Shown piece by piece: positions 25,725-45,100 of a DNA stretch of 64,000 nt. The notes under the pieces are model-generated. The model was not told where the DNA came from and ran no database searches. It saw nothing but the letters and a program-made list of their open reading frames with translations. The position numbers and the translations under genes were made by a program. The stretch's first letter is position 1, and the number at the start of each line of letters is the position of its first letter. The DNA is from Leidyana gryllorum EB-2025a (lineage: Eukaryota; Protista; Apicomplexa), in contig JBLWGC010000092.1 in the NCBI GenBank assembly GCA_048772705.1, positions 1 to 64,000 on the forward strand. The letters are read 5' to 3'.

Positions 25725-27655
25725 ATGAGTCCTATTGGCGTTAGCAAAACACTGGGTAGCATCATGACTCAGGAAAGTGGTCGGCCTCCGACAGAGGCAG
25801 AAGATGACGCTGCAACGCAAGAAGTCCAGAAGCAACGACAGAATGCTATCTCATGTCTAAAGCGGCATGGTAACGGATCCTTGATGTCCAGCACACGCGT
25901 GTGCCGTCTCCTCCGCCAAGAGAAGCAGCTACAGAACGATGCAGTCACTCATACACAGTCAAGATCTGACCCGACGGAATGGATCCCACTGATGATTGTG
26001 AGCATTTCCGATGGGGTGAGTGGACATCATCAGGTATGCCAATGAGTTGTGAATTCAGAGCACCGCGCAGGGGACCTCCTCAAAAAGAGTGAAATGGTGT
26101 GTTGAGGGCTGGACAAGCCGCAGCATAATTGGGGAATATGCATTGTTACAACGATGCTTTGACACTCACACTCTCCAAGAGAGACTAGCGGTAGCGGCAT
26201 TGAAACCTTGCTGCAAGCTTGGAATGATCAAACACGTTGATACGATGCCTAGCAAGGCGCGCTTGTGTCCCACGCCAGACAAAGTTGCACACACGGCAGC
26301 AGCGGAAGCCATCATGTCCAGAGGGGGTCATAGTGCTGTGATAGATGTTCCTATGACCGTACCACAGCTCGCAACTTGCCCCACAACGCGAAATTACTTA
26401 ACACAGCTGCAGGAGGCCTCCAGCCGACTGCCCAAACTAACCATGCTTCGAGATTGGGAGGTTGAGGAAAGCGGCCAAAGTACCGTTCACCTTTTCTTCG
26501 CAGGCTCACGTGCTTGCTGCCTTGCAAACAGGCCTTTTGGACATCAAGAGCATCGGGAAGGTGAGTGGTGAAGTCAGACGGCAAGATATTTCGGGGTCAG
26601 TTCGGCGGCAATTCCAAGATTTGTTGATCACAGCAGATCAACTGGACGGGGTAATGTTGACGGGAGCATTCGAACCGAACAGTATTCGCATGAGTGATCG
26701 TTCCCTCTCACACAGAGGTCTTCTGCTGCTGCCGCGAGTAGATGAAATGACCTTAATCGAGAATGCTATGCTATTTGGCGATATACATTCATTCAAAAAG
26801 CTTGGCGCAAAAACTCTGATTGACGCCATTGTTGAGGTGAGCGCCTCGCCGTGGCAGGTTTGGGTAACTTCCGTCACACAGGGATTACAAATCGAAGAAG
26901 TTACATACTTATGGAGTCCTGAGAAGATCGCTCTTTGGGAGAGGTTGATCTCATATGGTCGGTCCACAGGCAGTGCCTATGGGATGGTGGAAGCTTTGAG
27001 ACATCGCTGGGATGAGCAGGCGGCAAAGGCGTCTCTTCGTTGGTCTCTGGGGACAGTGATGTTTCACTACCTCAGAGGCTGTCATCCGTTCGAAGAGTTG
27101 GAGAGGGGGAGTGGGTCGAGTGGAATCTTGGCAAATATCAGAGCCCGTCGAAGTCCCCAGTTGGCAGCTCTGAAAGCTGAGCTGCCGGCGCTGGGGAGCA
27201 TGATTTGCTCACTCGTGTCTGTAGTTCCTGAAGGACGGATGAAATGTGGGGAAATGGCTAAGTGGGCACTCTTTGCAGACTGGGATCCGGGTTTGGGGAT
27301 GCGCGCAGTGGTTGCTGGCAGTCGTGAAGGCAAACGCACAGGTGATTTGATCAGGCAACTCAGCTTGAGGTGTGCTCGAGACGGAAAGCTGCGTCCAGAA
27401 TGGCAAAGGGAGCTGGAGTTGTTGCTGATGAGGATGGGGCATGAAGTCACAGTAGAAGAGGTCCAGTTTGATGAGTTAGACACATGCGATACAGATGCTG
27501 CGCTTGACCAACTCAAACCTAAAGTGCACCACAGCCAATCAGACTTGCTGCTTCGATTGATGGTAAGCCGAGCAAACAAGACAACTCCTTCTCTTCTTGC
27601 AATTAATCGATACAACTCTGGTGCGTCGGGCCAAGAAGACTTTTGCTTTTTATAG
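25725..27655 (+). CDS. Divergent protein-kinase-like protein (probable pseudokinase), multi-exon
   Basis: C-lobe motifs YLWSPE, WSLGTVMFHYLRGCHPF, LVSVVPEGRMKC; no HRD/DFG visible. Confidence 0.5.
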
Positions 27656-35953: not shown

Positions 35954-36494
35954 ATGGTTCCCCTACCCGCTGTTATATGTGTAGCGCTCTGCTACTTACT
36001 GGTCTACGAAGCGATACAGATATGCTTTGCCCTAGGTCTGGGACGGCTCACCAAATTGAGTGACATCCTATTCATGTCCGCCCTTGGCTTCATCATCACA
36101 GCCAGCGTCTTTTCATTGTGTAGCATCAGCAGGGACTCGATGTGCGGGATCGGCCCATTTATAATAGGTCGGTTCTTCAATTCAGTTGAGGTGTAAGCTT
36201 GTAGGCGGCTGGATTTGCATGGTGCTGATGGGTCTTCAAGTGGTCCAGCGATGGATCATCGTGGGCGAGCTATCACTGGGTCAAACTTCTCTGTCTCTAT
36301 ACGCGGCTGTGTTCACTTCAGCCGCATTCGTCTTCTACACTGCTATCCTGTACTGGGTGATTCAAACGGCAAAACTGCATATTGAGGAAAAACGGTGCCC
36401 AGTGACATTCGAGGAGACCTCCAGGTCCTGGGATTCCGACTCCAGCGACTATCACTACACAGCTACCAACGAGCTGATGTGGACACGAAAATAG
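35954..36494 (+). CDS. Small multi-pass membrane protein, 2 exons
   Basis: Hydrophobic ORFs 35954-36196 and 36186-36494 separated by a short intron. Confidence 0.55.
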
Positions 36495-39243
36495 CTACGC
36501 GTATGTGCGATTCAAGGCCTGATCGTATCCTTCCAATCCGTTACTGCTGGCGGACCCCTCAATACCATACTGTGCCATCAGCTGCCGGTACCCCAATGAT
36601 CCAGTGGTCAGAATCATAATGGCCCGCGTTCCTTTCCACTGATGCTCAGCCAAATATCGGCAAGCGCTCATTTCACTTCTGGTGATGCCCCCAGGAACAA
36701 TCAGGATGGTGACAGGGACTTTGTCGCCATCCTGGGGCATCGACATATTGGCGCGAGCTGATCGACCGGAATGTCCTCCAAGCAGGCGACTAACAGGTGC
36801 TACCAGCTGAAGTGCATCATCAATTCGAGCTCAGACCCAATGTCAAACGCAACGCACTCCTCCATTCCACCTCGGCATACCCTCCACACTCACACTCACA
36901 CACTCACTCACACACACCCACCCACTTCCCCTGCCCTTCGTCATGCATCGCCACTTACGGATTCCTCGTTCGCGCGTACCACTGCTTTCCACGTTCTCCC
37001 CTCGTTCTCCATTGTTGCGGATTGAAAGAGCTTGACTGCGACGCCTCTGATTGATAGGAGACTGTGCTACTTGCCGACGCTTACCCAGCAACGGGGCATA
37101 CCCACTATGGACATAACTAATATCTCGGACCACAGGTTCCTCAGATCGCACGATGTCGAAGGTCTTCTTCAAGAACTGCCAATCACTTAGTGTGCCTTTC
37201 TTATATTGTGTGCATCCCAGTATGCCGGCTTTCTCTAAAGCACTCCACCTGTAGCCTTCCCATATCCCATACTCGCGACACAATTGCCGTCTCAAGGCCT
37301 GATGTGCTCCGCGATCGAATTGTTCCGCGTGGACGCGACAATTCAACGCCGCCAACCGGTATATATCCTCCAAAGGATATTGTCGGTCACACAATCCGAT
37401 GAGAACCCGGCAATTCTCCTCGAACGTCGAAGCACCGCCCATTATCTCTAAACGATACTCAGTCTGAGCCTCATTCTGTTACACGAGGCACTCACCGTCT
37501 TCGATACGCAGTAGCGTGTAGAATGCCGGATGCTTTATGATGTTTGTCACCAGAAATGTGCTCACATTTATATGATCGGCCAAATGCCGATGCTCGCCTT
37601 GATGCTGTTTCAATTGCGACATGACTTGCTGCATTTCTGCCATACTCCATTGCCCTGTGCGCCCTCTCTCAAATGCTGACTGAATATTCAAAGCATAGGT
37701 ATGTAGTGTGCTCCCAAGCTCGGTGTGTGGTAAAACGCGCGTCTCTCTGTACACCTTATCTTGATCTGTGAGCTTCATTTTCAATGGCTCGCCATTTAAG
37801 ACCTCCCCCGGGATATCAACATGGGCACTCTGCAACATGAATAGCGTCTCGACAGCGACACCACGTTGTCACCTACATCGATTCCCCATGTCTGCTCCAA
37901 GAGCGCTTCGTACGTGAAGGGGGCCGCAAATGGTGATATCCAATCACAGTTACGATCAATGATTACCACTCTATCCAGCGTATATGCTGGAATAGCCTCG
38001 CGCTTGGATGTTTCAGGTGCGGATGGAAACAGGAAACTGGCCATAGGACCTTCGACTTTCTCATACAGCTCGTCACCCGGACCTTCGGAATCACAATGAC
38101 AGAAGTTTACCTCATCTTCGAGCAAGCGAACAGCAGCCTCTTGATCTTTGGCTCCCATGAGGACTTTGTGCATTCCGGGAGTCAGCTGACTGCAGAACTG
38201 GTCAGGAGGTAACGGCAGTTTAGTCGCAGAGACCGTTTCGCCGTGAAGCAAAGCTTCCACAACGTTTTCAGCCTCTTTGAACTGTTGCTCCAGGGTGTAG
38301 GTGACCACCTCCTGCTGATTGCCCGGAACTGTGGCTACTTCGGCGGCAAATGCTTCTTTGATCTCGCGGGCCATCAATCTCGCAGTCGGTCCGAGTCCAC
38401 AAATGACTGCTTGTTCGGGGATGTGGGCATGTTGCAACAACTTGACTGCGGCTCTGGCGAGATCTTGTATGGGTCCAAAGTCGCCATCCAGTTTCAGATC
38501 CCGATCCGCGGTGGGGCGTTCCAGCGAGTATACCATTTCATCCAGTCCGAAGCAGGGGAATTTGACATCCGCCACTGTGACTGAGAGATATTTGAAAGTG
38601 AGGTGATTGGGAGGGTTGGGTATGACATCCAGGCGCTTGAGTTGATCCAAGATGCGTGTCATGTGGAGTGTGCGGCGTCTTGGGAAGAAGTTGAGTTCAA
38701 TACGAGCCCGTTCTTTGACGCCGTGCGTCTTGAGGCTATCTTGAATGGCATCGAGGAGGCCACTAAATAAGAGAGAGATTGATCGCGTGTCCAGAGGAAG
38801 CGCCGACACACCCACCAGATATGATTTGAGGCACTCAGAGAACTGTTAGCTAGCACGACTATACGAATGGGTTTGGTGTTATCAACTTCCGAACAAGCGA
38901 CCGCAAGGTCATGATATTTGCTTAGTCGCCACCAGTTGTCGAGCTGCAGCTCTTTTAGAAAGGTCACATGGATGTCTGGGTTGATGTGCGGCGTGTGGTA
39001 ACGGATCAGAAGCAGTTGTTGCCTACATACAGATACTCAGTGGGCCAACAAGGGCGTCATCAAAGCAGATAAAGGACTTATAGCGGGGCCCGCCATCCCC
39101 AGCCGTCTAGTTGAAGGATGCCGAGGGACAACGAAAATAGCTCAGCTTACGGGCGGACTACCGAATAAGTTCTTGAGCTCCGAAGTGACTTCCGAGTGAA
39201 GACATCTTGAGAGCGCTGAGAGAGTGTCATAAACTACTGACAT
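36495..39243 (-). CDS. VPS33: Sec1/Munc18 family protein VPS33, multi-exon
   Basis: FDDALVGPLS, IIDRNCDWISPFAAPFTYEALL, LADHIN, DISYVHSGYAPL, GGITRSEMSACRYL, ILTTG. Exon 1 MSVVYDT...SELKNLF starts at ATG 39243. Confidence 0.85.
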
Positions 39244-39248
39244 CCAAA

Positions 39249-40509
39249 TTAATTGTAATACAACTCAATGTTCATCCCATGCTTAATTTCATATGTATCC
39301 AAGTCTATATGATCCTTGAGCACCACATGTTGTTTCTGGAACTTCATTTTCTCTGGGCGAGTACCTGATCAATCGATCGATTATCAGCAGCGAGAGACAC
39401 TACTTACCTAAGATTGCCGCAGCCAGCTTCTTCACATCGAGTACAGTGTCATCTTTAGAGCACTTGATACGAGCTTTTTTACCCAGACGATCGTTCACTG
39501 TTATCTCCATAAGCATTTGCGGCTGTGCGGCCGTCGCGTTGGGTGTCGTCGGCAACTCGTCGCGCACTGAAGTCTGAACCTTTCTCTTCTCCTTGTCAAC
39601 TTCGTCTCGTTTTCGCTTTCGCTCGCGCTCTTTCAAACGGTTCGCGCCGTAGTCGTCGCGGTCACGCCAAACTCGTGGTAACCTGTTCTCTGGAGGACGC
39701 TCATCCACTTCGCCATGATGACGGTACCCGCCTCGATACCTTGAGGACGAGACCGCCGCCGCTCCCGATGTTTCATCTGCGGATCCCTTGCGGCGTTGGT
39801 CTCCTTCGGCACCCACTGTCTCCCACTCGGTCCGGCGACGCATCTTCCGTCGCTGATCGTCCTCAATGTCTTCCGGGCCGCCGCCGTCCCTGGTATCACG
39901 GGTCCCGCCACCAACTGGCTCCCGTCGGCCGTCCCTACCGCGGTCCCGGGTATCGCCGCGATCCCTTTCTCTCTCGCCACGCCTGTCTCGGTCCCACTCC
40001 CGGTCCCGATCGCCTCCTCTACTATCACAAGAACCCCGCCGGTCCCCTGCGTAGCCTCCTCTCCGATTATTCCTTTCGGGAAACCCTCGATCTCTGTGGC
40101 GATAAGCGGACGACCGATCGCGATCATATGGCCGTGAACTTCCTCCCTCCTCATCTCGCCCATATTCGTCCCGATAGGCCCGAGGCTGGTATCGCGTGTG
40201 CCACCCTTCACCGCTCCGATACCGTCGATCTTCTGACGGTCGGTGAGATTGAGCCTGGCGCTGGGGTGACTCATTCGGCGATCTCGCAGCTGAGTGGCGG
40301 TCGGGCCTGCCGCGTGAACGGGAATGCTCCCTATCTGCGGCAGCCTTCGCGGGTCGGGCACCCTCGTGGTCATCCTCTCGTGGCTTTACACGCACTGCCG
40401 CATCCTCTTGCTGCTTTTCATCCGACCTCAGACGCTCCTCTTCTCGCTCCTCGCCTTCCCCTTCCTCACGGGAGTCAATGTGTTGAGGGTCGGAGTCTTC
40501 CTCCTGCAT
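39249..40509 (-). CDS. HUB1: Hub1/UBL5 ubiquitin-like domain preceded by a long in-frame Arg/Asp/Glu-rich region (intron 39365-39407)
   Basis: Spliced C-terminus [35 protein letters not shown]|[37 protein letters not shown] matches the UBL5 consensus, including the terminal YY. Confidence 0.88.
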
Positions 40510-40513
40510 GGGA

Positions 40514-42082
40514 CTATATTTTTTTCGCAACGTCGCTCGCAGCTGCAGGTCGCCTAAAATGCCTATCCCATTCTCCCTGAATATAATGAAACACAATCAG
40601 GGCTCGACGGTCGTCCCCAGACAACGGATTTTTGTCGGGATGCCAATTAAGCTGCAACTGACGTAATCTACGACGTAACTCTTGCTCATTGCTGATAGCG
40701 TTCAGCTCCACAGCAATTTTGTCGATCAACGCTTGCGCACTGCGGGCTTCCATATGACACCAAAGGAAAACGAAACTGGCCACGTACCTAGCATGACCTC
40801 CCCTACGTGACTTGGGCACACGATCACTCGACTTCCTGCTCGCCGATCCTGATGGCATCCGAGCGCCAAAAACATATGGGGGAGCGCTGGCAGCTCCCCA
40901 ATTAGCAGCGTATTCGCTTCGCGAGGGCCGCATGGGACACTTCTGCTCGTGCCGCCGACGAACCTGTATCGCAGTACACACAGGGACGTCCATGTTCCAC
41001 CCATATTCGGCCGCAAATCTCAAACCGCAAAATCTGCAGCTGTTACGAGGATTCATGTCACAGTTGACCACATGTTGATCGAGTAGATAGCTCGCTGGAC
41101 CAACATCGGTTGACCGAAACTCTCGAGAGCAGTGCCGGCACTGGAAAGAAGGGTGTGCACACACACTGACAGCCTTACTTGCGCGTAATTCTTGGGATTC
41201 GCTCGACAATATTTCGAATGTTCGGTCAATCGTGCCTGCAGCCCTTTCAGTCCTTCCTCAGTATTGCCACCGAACGATGTTCTGCAGATGGATGTGGGTG
41301 CGATAAGCCATGGTGCTCACCCGCAATAGTGACAACATGTCTCGGGGTTGCTTTTACATACTTCTTCATGTAGGGCCACTTGTTCCAGAGCGATCACATC
41401 CGGAGCTGACTGGAAATGTAAGCCGCAGAAGACACACCAAGCGTTGGAAGACGGATTTTGAGCACATATCTGAAGCGGTGTAGATGGATTTCTTCCATTA
41501 GATTGTTCGTACCCTTTGATGCAGTATTCGGTGGGCGTATTTGTTGTCCCCGAATGCAAGTCCGCAGTAGACACAGTCTTTGCCCTCATAGATACTTTCC
41601 GGATCGAGAGGCGGTTTGTCCGGGATCTTCTTTCTAGCGGCTTCTTCTTGTTTGGCTCTATGCTCGCGATACTGGGCGAATAGATTCCGAATGCTGGATG
41701 TGTTGAGGGGTGTTTTGATTTGGGGGTCACTAGTCTCCACCGGAGGGGTGTCATCAGGAACTTCGACAGGTGCGGTTGGGCATTCCTCCAGACTTGGGCT
41801 GGGCCTCAATAGCTTGAGTCGGTCGAGAGAGGCCTTGACGGGTTTGGATTGTTCGGGTTTGCTGAGTGACCGAGAATAAGTTGGGGCCGGTGGAGAGAAG
41901 GATGGGAGCGGAATTTCATGTCGTGTGAACATGGAAGCACCAGGTCTACTGGGACATTGTGACTCTTCATGGTCTCTGATAGCTGACCAAGAGAATGATT
42001 TGCCACAATATTGGCAATTGAAGCTCTCTTCGAGAATCTCGGCTATACTCCCATAGGGTCCCAGATCGGCTTGGTGTTCCAT
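40514..42082 (-). CDS. Repeated C2HC-type Zn-finger protein with C-terminal J-domain (HPD), multi-exon
   Basis: CQYCG..HE..C, CVYCG..H..C, CVFCG..HEEVC, CRHC..HVVNC, CRFCG..HEQKC; [13 protein letters not shown]. Confidence 0.75.
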
Positions 42083-42108
42083 ATATAAAAAGGGCCCCGA
42101 AAAAAGTC

Positions 42109-45100
42109 ATGCAGGACTTCGATGCAGAGGAAGACGAGAGGTATTGGAACCGCCTGACTGAACAGCACGAGAGAGCGGATGTGGCAATACCCCAGACAAC
42201 GGGTAATGTATTTGAGGATGTCTTGGAGGCTCTGAGAGGGTAAGCTTGAGTGGGTTTGAAGACTGCTTTTTATCTGTTCACCGCAGGACTGACGCGAGGC
42301 GTCCCCAGAGTCTGGGGCGCCCCCCTCAAATGACGGTACTGCGACGAAGTCGTCGGGGTCGTTTACGCAAGGAGGTCAGAGACATATATCTCCACGAGGA
42401 GTTCCCTTGTGGGGTTGTGGACTGTGGCGTCTGTCAAGAAATGGAAGAGGATAGTGAAGGAGCGAAGCTTTCTGCTCAGTCTATCGTTCTGATAGACTCT
42501 CCGGTGGCGATTCAGGAAGTTGACTTCCTGTGGGACGACCCGTCGGTGAACAACGTGGTGATTCTTCAGTCTGTTTTGGACGAAGTCCGAGAGAAGTCCA
42601 GAAGGCGTAATTATCGACGGCTGTTACGGCTGTGTGGTTTTGAGGCTCCTGACGGCGTAGTTGCAGCCGGGAACACGAGACGTCAACGCCGTAAGGTTCT
42701 GGGAGACCAAGATGAGGTCCCTCCCAACCGTCGCTTCTACCTGTTTCCAAACACCGCGATGGTGGGGACTTTTGCGCCCCGTGAAGATTGGGAAACCGAG
42801 GATGCCTATTCCTGCCGTCTCGTGAAGCGGTCAGCTTTGTGGTACAATAGACACCGCAACTCGGACGGCGATGCCATGGACGAGATGAGCGCCTCTGCTG
42901 ATCCCAAGGTGGTGGTGCTGACCACCACTGAGAAGAGGAAACAAATGCTGATATGCAACGAGGAGGATCGAGTGACAGCAATGACTCTGTCAGAGTGGAT
43001 CAACAAGGCTCGCACTCAACACCCGACCGCAGGCGAAAAGCTCGTTGGCAATTATGCGGATGACGATATGGCGGAGGGGTTGGGAGGTGTGAGGGAGGCG
43101 GACCCTGAAGAGCGGGAGCGATCGATGCGTGCGTTGGATCTTCTTCGAAAGGCTGCTGATGGTATTGACGTGGTGCTGCGAGACGATTTACGTAAAGCTC
43201 AAGCGGTATATCCGCCTCATTTGTCTCCCACCACACTGGCGGCTCGTGTGCGAGCAGGTCGCGCGTTCCAAGGAAGCCTCAAGACCGCCCCCACTACCTG
43301 CTGGAAGGCCACAGTCACTGTGCCCCATGGTGACGAGAGTATTGACATTAAGATCGCGGGCAGTGTGAACATCAATCGCGCTGTGGACGGAGATATAGTC
43401 GTGGTGGAAATGTTGGACGATCAAGATATCATTGCCAGGAAAGCCGCCGCGGCTGAAGAAGCTCGACTGGATGGAGTGGACGAACTCGATTTGGAGGCGA
43501 GGAGACCGGTTACGGATATCCAACCCGATCGTCAACACTATATTGGCCGTGTGATTGGCATTGTCCAGCGTAACTGGCACACTTATTGTGGGAGCCTCTT
43601 GAAGGGAGTGGCCAGTGGGACTCAGCGTGGGGAGGATCGAAAGTTTGTCCCCGCCAGTCCGAAGATCCCTCCGTTCGTCATCCGCACCCACCAAGCCGCA
43701 GCTCTCGAGGGCCGACGATTGGTCGCTTGCATGGATTCGTGGGATCGATACAGTTTGTACGCCAGAGGGCATTGGATTGAAGACTTGGGTGTGGCCGGAG
43801 AGGATGCCACAGAAGCAAAAGTGATTCTGAGAGAGCACAATGTGATAACGCGAGAGTTCCCTCCCTCAGTGATGCGATGTTTGCCACCCCCGTCCTATCA
43901 AGTGTCCAATGAAGACATGAGCACCCGACTGGACATTCGTCTGAAAAAGTGTTTCTGTGACAATTGCCGTCTGCAGCGGAATGGCAAAGAGATTCCCGGG
44001 ACAAAGGACCCCAAACTGGAAGAGTTGGTGGGAACACCGTGTATTTTTTATGCGGACAAGTCGCGTAAGGACCGTCCGTTATTGAATTGGCTCGAGGAGG
44101 ACGTGGAACCGTACAAGGCTGCTGTTAAGCGTCGAAAGAAGAATCCCAAGTACGAAGAGTACGAGGATCCAGAGCTTCTGGGATCAACTGGTACAATCTG
44201 TTGTTCAATTGATCCCCCAACGTGTGTGGATATAGACGACTCTCTTTCAGTAAAGTTCCTGAAGAACGGCAATTATGAGATCGGAGTTCACATTGCTGAT
44301 GTGACTCACTATGTGAAGGCCGATACCGCCATTGATGTCGAAGCGGCTGAGAGATGTACAACAGTATATCTCGTCAACCAACGTACCGATATGTTGCCCA
44401 AGAGGTTAAGTGCTGATATATGTTCCCTGAAATCCGGGGTAGATCGGCTTAGTTTCAGCGTGTTCTGGGAGATGACTCCCAATGCTAAAATCAAGAACAC
44501 CCGCTTCCACAAGACGGTAATGCACGCTGTGGCAGCATTCAATTATCAACAAGCGCAAAACATCATTGATGACGGCCAGGACAATGGGCCGATGGCAGTG
44601 CGTCTGCGTGTGCTCAATGATTTGGCCAAGAAACTGCGTGCTCGCCGAATGGAAGCGGGCGCTGTGGAGCTGTCGGCGACGGAAGTCAAGTTCACAATGG
44701 ACGATAAGGGTCAACCGGTCGAAGTGGAACCGTATCCTGAACTTGAAACACATCACTTGGTTGAAGAGTTTATGCTTCTAGCCAATATGGCCGTTGCTGA
44801 GAAGATTTACCAGACTTTCCCGGACTGCGCTGTGCTCAGACGCCATCCTCCCCCCAAAGCCGACGGGCTCGCACTGTTGGCCAAGATTCTGGCTGAGAAA
44901 GGGTTCAACTTTAAGTACGGCACGAGTGCAGAGTTGGCTGATTCATTGACCAAAGCCACCCGGCCGGATGACCCCGAGTTCAACAGACAGCTGAGGGCCA
45001 TCACGGTTCAGTACATGAATCAAGCAGTGTACTTTTGCACCGGCGAGATCAAAGATCCCGAACAGATGCGTCACTACGCTCTCGCCAGCAACTTTTATAC

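Follow-up and report, generated by a model that had tools for sequence, protein, structure and literature searches.

In microsporidia, transcripts start in upstream genes or end in downstream ones (PMC3629993), and in Cryptosporidium parvum RNAs carrying two to four co-oriented protein genes, with no trans-splicing, are found alongside internal monocistronic RNAs, poly-T being among the motifs of open chromatin (10.1101/2025.01.17.633476). The genomes of the gregarine Porospora cf. gigantea A and B are 84% coding, a compaction attributed partly to 28-nucleotide (nt) introns, and a term search did not find the words "intergenic" and "UTR" (untranslated region) in the text of that report (PMC9250747). 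In the literature that we searched, no description was found of how crowded gregarine genes are transcribed. Here we analyze a 64-kb window of the gregarine Leidyana gryllorum EB-2025a (positions 1 to 64,000 of contig JBLWGC010000092.1, hereafter C92, one of 237 contigs in a 15.5-Mb assembly), in which three minus-strand genes follow one another with spacers of only 4 and 5 nt. These genes encode a zinc-finger J-protein, a Hub1/UBL5 protein with a long N-terminal region rich in R, D, E and G (RD-Hub1), and the Sec1-family protein VPS33. On balance it seems probable that they are separate but crowded genes with embedded signals and overlapping transcripts. Gregarines are, to our knowledge, the least studied large branch of Apicomplexa.

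Gene boundaries at the J-protein/RD-Hub1/VPS33 locus

The two tandem junctions, and the genes that they separate, are as follows.

40507-40516, minus strand: junction 1, read directly as the J-protein stop TAG (40516-40514), the 4-nt spacer TCCC (40513-40510) and the RD-Hub1 ATG (40509-40507)
39241-39251, minus strand: junction 2, read directly as the Hub1 stop TAA (39251-39249), the 5-nt spacer TTTGG (39248-39244) and the VPS33 ATG (39243-39241)
40519-40525, minus strand: A7 tract in the last J-protein codons (AAA AAA A of ATA), T7 on the plus strand; candidate start-proximal promoter or initiator element
40514-42082, minus strand: zinc-finger J-protein gene, from ATG 42082 to the TAG of junction 1, with the J domain in the last exon
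41512-41470, 41320-41282 and 41178-41141, minus strand: predicted J-protein introns, GT-AG candidates giving an in-frame chain, with 40787-40740 as an optional in-frame intron
39249-40509, minus strand: RD-Hub1 gene, 405 amino acids (aa), about 330 aa rich in R, D, E and G and then Hub1/UBL5; intron at 39407-39365
36495-39243, minus strand: VPS33 (Sec1 family) gene, 766 aa, assigned from Pfam Sec1, Vps33 structures and gregarine alignments
39150-39107, 39030-38976, 38815-38763, 37876-37830, 37495-37448, 37084-37036 and 36958-36807, minus strand: predicted VPS33 introns, giving an in-frame chain

The J-protein frame ends GCG AAA AAA ATA TAG, which places the A7 tract 10-16 nt 5' of the RD-Hub1 ATG, and the Hub1 frame ends TAT TAC AAT TAA, with AATTAATTT (39254-39246) crossing the stop. 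An earlier note on this DNA had described both stop-spacer-start junctions, the A7 tract and the sequence across the Hub1 stop, and every coordinate that it gave matches the minus-strand reading. Its claim that the genes leave no room for UTRs and a promoter between them also stands, all four gene boundaries having been upheld by the evidence that follows. Homology searches were performed exon by exon, joined exon chains being used only for an in-script reading-frame check. In that check the J-protein chain (466 or 482 aa), the RD-Hub1 chain and the VPS33 chain are each in frame without an internal stop.

The end of the J-protein gene is fixed by its last exon, which matches the J domain of 1iur (query residues 18-60 of 74, E = 5.9e-5) and has helix II, the HPD motif (WHPDKNP) and helix III, although the Pfam DnaJ match is weak (19.5 bits, with a curated cut-off of 27.8). 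Because the 1iur match covers residues 18-60 of 74, the J domain is finished 14 residues before the stop. Moreover, no GTRNG donor able to splice past this stop was found from 40739 to the stop itself.

Across the junction, a 398-codon open frame, in which ATG 40509 is the first ATG, continues stop-free into the Hub1 exon. Hub1/UBL5 proteins have a ubiquitin fold of about 73 residues that ends in YY plus one residue and lacks GG. The two Hub1 exons match UBL5 residues 2-36 (E = 1.4e-9) and 35-72 of 73 (E = 1.1e-7), and the protein terminates in ELYYN, as expected of a family member; since the matches reach residue 72 of 73, ELYYN followed by the stop is the normal family end. Two further frames are long and open across the RD region, and the rival frame on the same strand runs from ATG 40373 to the stop at 39633 (246 aa). 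When the RD-frame codons were shuffled, the rival frame was open for at least 250 codons in 20% of trials, whereas in none of 1000 shuffles of the rival-frame codons did the RD frame remain open over 329 codons, so that a frame such as the 246-aa one is to be expected as a side effect of RD codons. The codon score favors the RD frame just after ATG 40509 and again ahead of Hub1, although within the RD core its profile fails to tell the RD frame from the rival one. Codon usage and shuffling thereby support the RD frame as the one probably under selection. A word search with the Hub1 part of RD-Hub1 gave P0001, from a Logan sample, as its sole match, and a word search for close relatives with the Hub1 exon plus linker gave no match. 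P0001 and P0015 (loci L004, L027 and L028, from Logan samples) represent a 295-aa protein in which an RS/K/E-rich N-terminal region is joined to Hub1, so that this genome is not alone in having a Hub1 with an N-terminal extension.

For VPS33, Pfam Sec1 matches three exons (model positions 65-573), and exon 4 is Vps33-like: the only solved relatives found are Vps33 proteins, with Vps33 best. The protein is thus a member of the Sec1/Munc18 family, VPS33 subfamily, and its nearest relatives in a 1.8-billion-protein library are EukProt proteins of the gregarines Gregarina sp. Poly1 and Blabericola migrator; a word search for close relatives with the VPS33 exon gave no match. Exons 1-3 have no Pfam match, but for exons 2-3 homology is shown by alignment with the N-terminal portions of VPS33 proteins from gregarines (alignment A1). 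Because the translations of exons 2-3 in this alignment contain no Met, the start must be in exon 1, where 39243 is the sole ATG of the open stretch (39264-39145). In addition, exon 1 (MSVVYDTLSALSRCL) aligns with the N-terminus (MNFLNQDTWSQLEKCL) encoded by a related gregarine contig, L025 (alignment A2), and VPS33 intron 2 here has a counterpart of identical position and phase in the L025 orthologue. On frame and homology grounds, the four boundaries of the two tandem junctions are confirmed as real.

The outer edges of the chain are equally tight.

42083-42108, between divergent genes: head-to-head spacer of 26 nt (ATATAAAAAGGGCCCCGAAAAAAGT), between the J-protein ATG at 42082 and a plus-strand ATG at 42109
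36492-36497, between convergent genes: tail-to-tail junction of 0 nt, where a plus-strand stop TAG (36492-36494) touches the VPS33 stop (CTA, 36495-36497) to read TAGCTA

The plus-strand ATG at 42109 is the putative start of DIS3 exon 1, and the 26-nt spacer is the only non-coding DNA 5' of the J-protein/RD-Hub1/VPS33 chain. Within ATATAAAAAGGGCCCCGAAAAAAGT, A5 and A6 runs (the A6 at 42100-42105) flank a GGGCCCC core, an arrangement that resembles a minimal bidirectional promoter. At the other end, the plus-strand partner is a putative small membrane-protein gene (35954-36494) with a modest coding score and a weak VanZ match. With a convergent spacer of 0 nt, one or both of the two genes must have a 3' UTR that runs antisense to the neighbor. 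No second copy or haplotype of the locus was found in the assembly. GC content is about 52-54%, and the introns at the locus are short GT-AG introns of 38-55 nt, with one of 152 nt. That one, the last VPS33 intron (36807-36958, minus strand), is long for the locus and contains a GT/GAGT-rich, microsatellite-like stretch.

Gene crowding and start-proximal A/T runs

Spacing and start statistics were obtained from 264 kb sampled out of the 15.5 Mb, consisting of the 64-kb window and 200 kb of contig C43. Among the 35 confident tandem pairs of open reading frames (ORFs), the median distance from stop to first ATG is 190 nt; the distance is 4-12 nt in four pairs, and three overlap. Convergent ORF pairs lie no more than 6 nt apart or overlap in 7 of 38 cases. 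Some of the apparent overlaps are introns that escaped the ORF filter. The tandem distances place the 4-5-nt chain in the short tail, as the short extreme of a continuous, genome-wide packing rather than the norm. At the locus itself, none of the three orientations leaves spacers long enough for UTRs (4 and 5 nt in tandem, 26 nt head-to-head and 0 nt tail-to-tail), which is the pattern of compacted genomes. A polycistron offers no explanation of the 0-nt convergent junction, where transcripts or signals are forced to overlap the neighbor, and the most economical account of zero-spaced convergent genes would be that signals and transcript ends routinely lie inside neighboring genes.

At 27655/27656 (plus strand of the window) a TAG adjoins an ATG and is preceded by ttgctttttaTAG, which combines a pyrimidine tract with an AG; since introns of 84 or 93 nt could keep the frame there, an intron acceptor seems a better reading of this abutment than a junction of genes. 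Accepted ORFs cover 47% of the 200 kb of C43, compared with 88% of the window, and C43:1-70000 (loci L005-L011), with few long coding-like ORFs, may be subtelomeric or repeat-rich. A tandem array of near-identical genes of about 311 and 359 codons occupies C43:107000-122000 (loci L015-L017), with repeated stop-to-ATG spacers of 12 nt (TGAaccaacttagctATG) as well as spacers of 370 nt.

Although the chain had been called operon-like in the earlier note, the term does not extend to a conserved or functional unit. The J-protein is a chaperone cofactor, Hub1 a splicing-related ubiquitin-like protein and VPS33 a vesicle-fusion factor, so that the three products are functionally unrelated. Moreover, the gene 5' of VPS33 in L025 is LDH/MDH rather than Hub1: between the LDH/MDH stop TAA (1924-1926) and the VPS33 ATG at 1941 lies a 14-nt spacer that consists of A and T only (AAAAATATTTTTAA). 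Close spacing is, from these two contigs, apparently common to both organisms, whereas the gene chain is not, and a conserved or functional operon is not supported.

One recurrent signal was detected, namely start-proximal A/T runs. A/T homopolymers of at least 5 nt are present at -30 to -1 of 8 of the 68 putative starts, compared with 7 of 394 internal ATGs (Fisher p = 4e-4). In the 64-kb window, A/T runs of at least 6 nt number only 16, of which 6 are found in the 30 nt preceding a putative start (binomial p = 6e-7). The succession of a run of at least 6 nt and a first ATG was observed 9 times, with 2.3 expected. A-run words also head the list of enriched upstream 6-mers, and both the A7-TAT element before RD-Hub1 and the all-A/T spacer of L025 fit this signal. 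Putative starts show no purine preference at -3 (Kozak context), and start context is therefore unable to rank ATGs.

We propose that the locus consists of three separate, unrelated genes whose spacers have shrunk so far that expression signals would lie in neighboring coding sequence. Translation of each gene would use a separate mRNA with a very short leader, as this mRNA would begin either within the final codons of the preceding gene or within the 4-5-nt spacer. Beside the start codon, a short A/T-rich element may help, A7-TAT in the case of RD-Hub1 and AATTAATTT in that of VPS33, and each upstream mRNA would have its 3' end within the gene that follows. Longer RNAs that read through two or three genes may coexist with these transcripts, as in Cryptosporidium, and would serve mainly the first ORF. 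This proposal draws on what is observed: the boundaries and their spacing, the recurrence of such spacing here and in a relative, the non-conserved synteny and the enrichment of A/T runs. If it is correct, the codons for the C-terminal Lys-Lys-Ile of the J-protein also serve as the A7-TAT element ahead of RD-Hub1, and coding sequence would then carry a second layer of signals, a caution to annotators.

Several points weigh against separate genes with embedded signals. The A/T run precedes only about 12% of putative starts and so cannot be a general promoter; other tight junctions in the sample have no A/T run; and the upstream genes yielded no defined promoter or poly(A) motif. In addition, the gene models of the 264-kb sample are ORF-based approximations, and the proposed transcript starts and ends are deduced from DNA sequence. 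The suggestion of promoters embedded in the upstream coding sequence, one of those made in the earlier note, thus gains indirect support from the enrichment of A/T runs before starts and from the L025 spacer, and it is weakened by the small share of starts that have such a run.

Alternative explanations of the chain

The alternative that survives best, although we regard it as unlikely, is that one capped RNA from the J-protein/DIS3 spacer carries J, RD-Hub1 and VPS33, and that ribosomes reinitiate 4-5 nt past the TAG and TAA. Distances of 4 and 5 nt from stop to start are within the physically possible range of termination-reinitiation, and on the 5' side of the chain the 26-nt spacer is all the non-coding DNA there is, as this model would have it. 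However, the upstream ORFs are long (466 and 405 codons), and reinitiation following long ORFs is inefficient. The chain, moreover, is not kept in L025. Even for C. parvum, whether the long RNAs yield protein is left unsettled (10.1101/2025.01.17.633476).

In caliciviruses and influenza B, termination upstream ribosomal binding sites (TURBS) contain a UGGGA motif complementary to the loop of 18S rRNA helix 26. Stop and restart lie a few nt apart at both junctions, as at such sites (4 and 5 nt), and on the minus strand TGGGA, like TURBS motif 1 of caliciviruses, occurs 61 nt before the first restart ATG (40570-40566) and 36 nt before the second (39279-39275). TGGGA is, however, at chance before starts (7 of 68, with 10% expected) and missing at other tight junctions, and the 18S helix-26 region of this genome (L026) has no UCCCA partner (TCCCA in the DNA). 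A calicivirus-type signal was rejected as a candidate for these reasons.

Leaky scanning, which the earlier note had offered as another route to the downstream ORFs of a polycistronic mRNA, is ruled out, since 28 ATGs precede the RD-Hub1 ATG from the J-protein start onward and 21 precede the VPS33 ATG from that of RD-Hub1. These counts are not below shuffle expectation (22.8 and 18.3), and the upstream ORFs are not AUG-poor as those of leaky-scanning systems are. The strong form of the polycistronic model, a single tricistronic mRNA with efficient reinitiation over 4-5-nt spacers after ORFs of more than 400 codons, perhaps genome-wide in gregarines, appears very doubtful; we know of no demonstration of efficient reinitiation of this type for long cellular genes.

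It is also quite improbable that junction 1 is an artefact of the gene model, either because the A7 tract is one base too long or is slipped on, in which case J and RD-Hub1 would be fused, or because the RD region does not belong to Hub1, which would leave gaps of normal size. Upstream of ATG 40509 the RD frame stays open for 29 codons, overlapping the J-protein frame, and one A fewer in the homopolymer joins the two. Nevertheless, the J domain is complete before its stop, and an ATG as the first usable codon after that stop is expected of a separate gene and would be a coincidence of about 5% for a fusion. Other runs of 6-7 A/T within long ORFs of the window keep frame, giving no sign of systematic homopolymer errors. 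As to the RD region, the openness of the 246-aa frame and the ambiguous codon score in the core are offset by the shuffling results and by the codon scores at either end of the region that are given above. An artefact at junction 1 would, moreover, leave junction 2 untouched.

Dinoflagellates and perkinsids, which are related alveolates, use a spliced leader, and the J-protein stop TAG supplies an AG 4 nt before the RD-Hub1 ATG. A polycistronic precursor resolved by spliced-leader trans-splicing or other processing, of the kinetoplastid, nematode or dinoflagellate type, is nonetheless most improbable: the spliced-leader search that the earlier note had in view found no dinoflagellate/perkinsid (DinoSL-type) leader at up to 3 mismatches in the whole 15.5-Mb assembly, a search of 34-46 kb gave no Rfam family, the TAG is preceded by A-rich rather than pyrimidine-rich sequence, no pyrimidine tract lies before the VPS33 ATG and no AG in the 5 nt before it, and spliced-leader searches in C. 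parvum are reported as not fitting trans-splicing.

Comparison with described systems

The locus belongs to a known kind of gene crowding with overlapping or multi-gene transcription. In the passages of PMC3629993 that cite Williams et al. 2005 and Corradi et al. 2008, Encephalitozoon cuniculi, Antonospora locustae and nucleomorphs have the same too-short spacers between unrelated neighbors, together with overlapping transcripts and very short 5' UTRs. The present locus differs from those of microsporidia and nucleomorphs in being apicomplexan, in its numerous short spliceosomal introns (38-55 nt, with one of 152 nt) and in placing two 4-5-nt junctions consecutively between long genes. Porospora cf. 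gigantea and Gregarina niphandrodes likewise have dense genes, a GC content near 54% and short introns (PMC9250747), those of L. gryllorum at this locus being longer, at 38-55 nt.

C. parvum is comparable as a compact genome from the sister lineage of gregarines. Its RNAs were seen by long reads and reverse-transcription PCR (RT-PCR) and contain an internal UTR between ORFs (10.1101/2025.01.17.633476), whereas 4-5 nt separate the ORFs here. Both the microsporidian and the C. parvum systems are described from transcripts, and the genes of the L. gryllorum chain are read from DNA. According to the summary given in the same C. parvum report, green-algal leaky-scanning polycistrons and fungal dicistronic genes also have co-oriented ORFs with short gaps and no spliced leader, but green-algal leaky scanning, in that summary, needs few or weak upstream AUGs, in contrast to the 28 and 21 ATGs that precede the downstream starts here. 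With two consecutive 4-5-nt junctions between long spliced genes, flanked by junctions of 26 and 0 nt, the locus is a compact test bed, and it could discriminate, for gregarines, between embedded minimal promoters of the kind found in microsporidia and Giardia and multi-gene RNAs of the kind found in Cryptosporidium.

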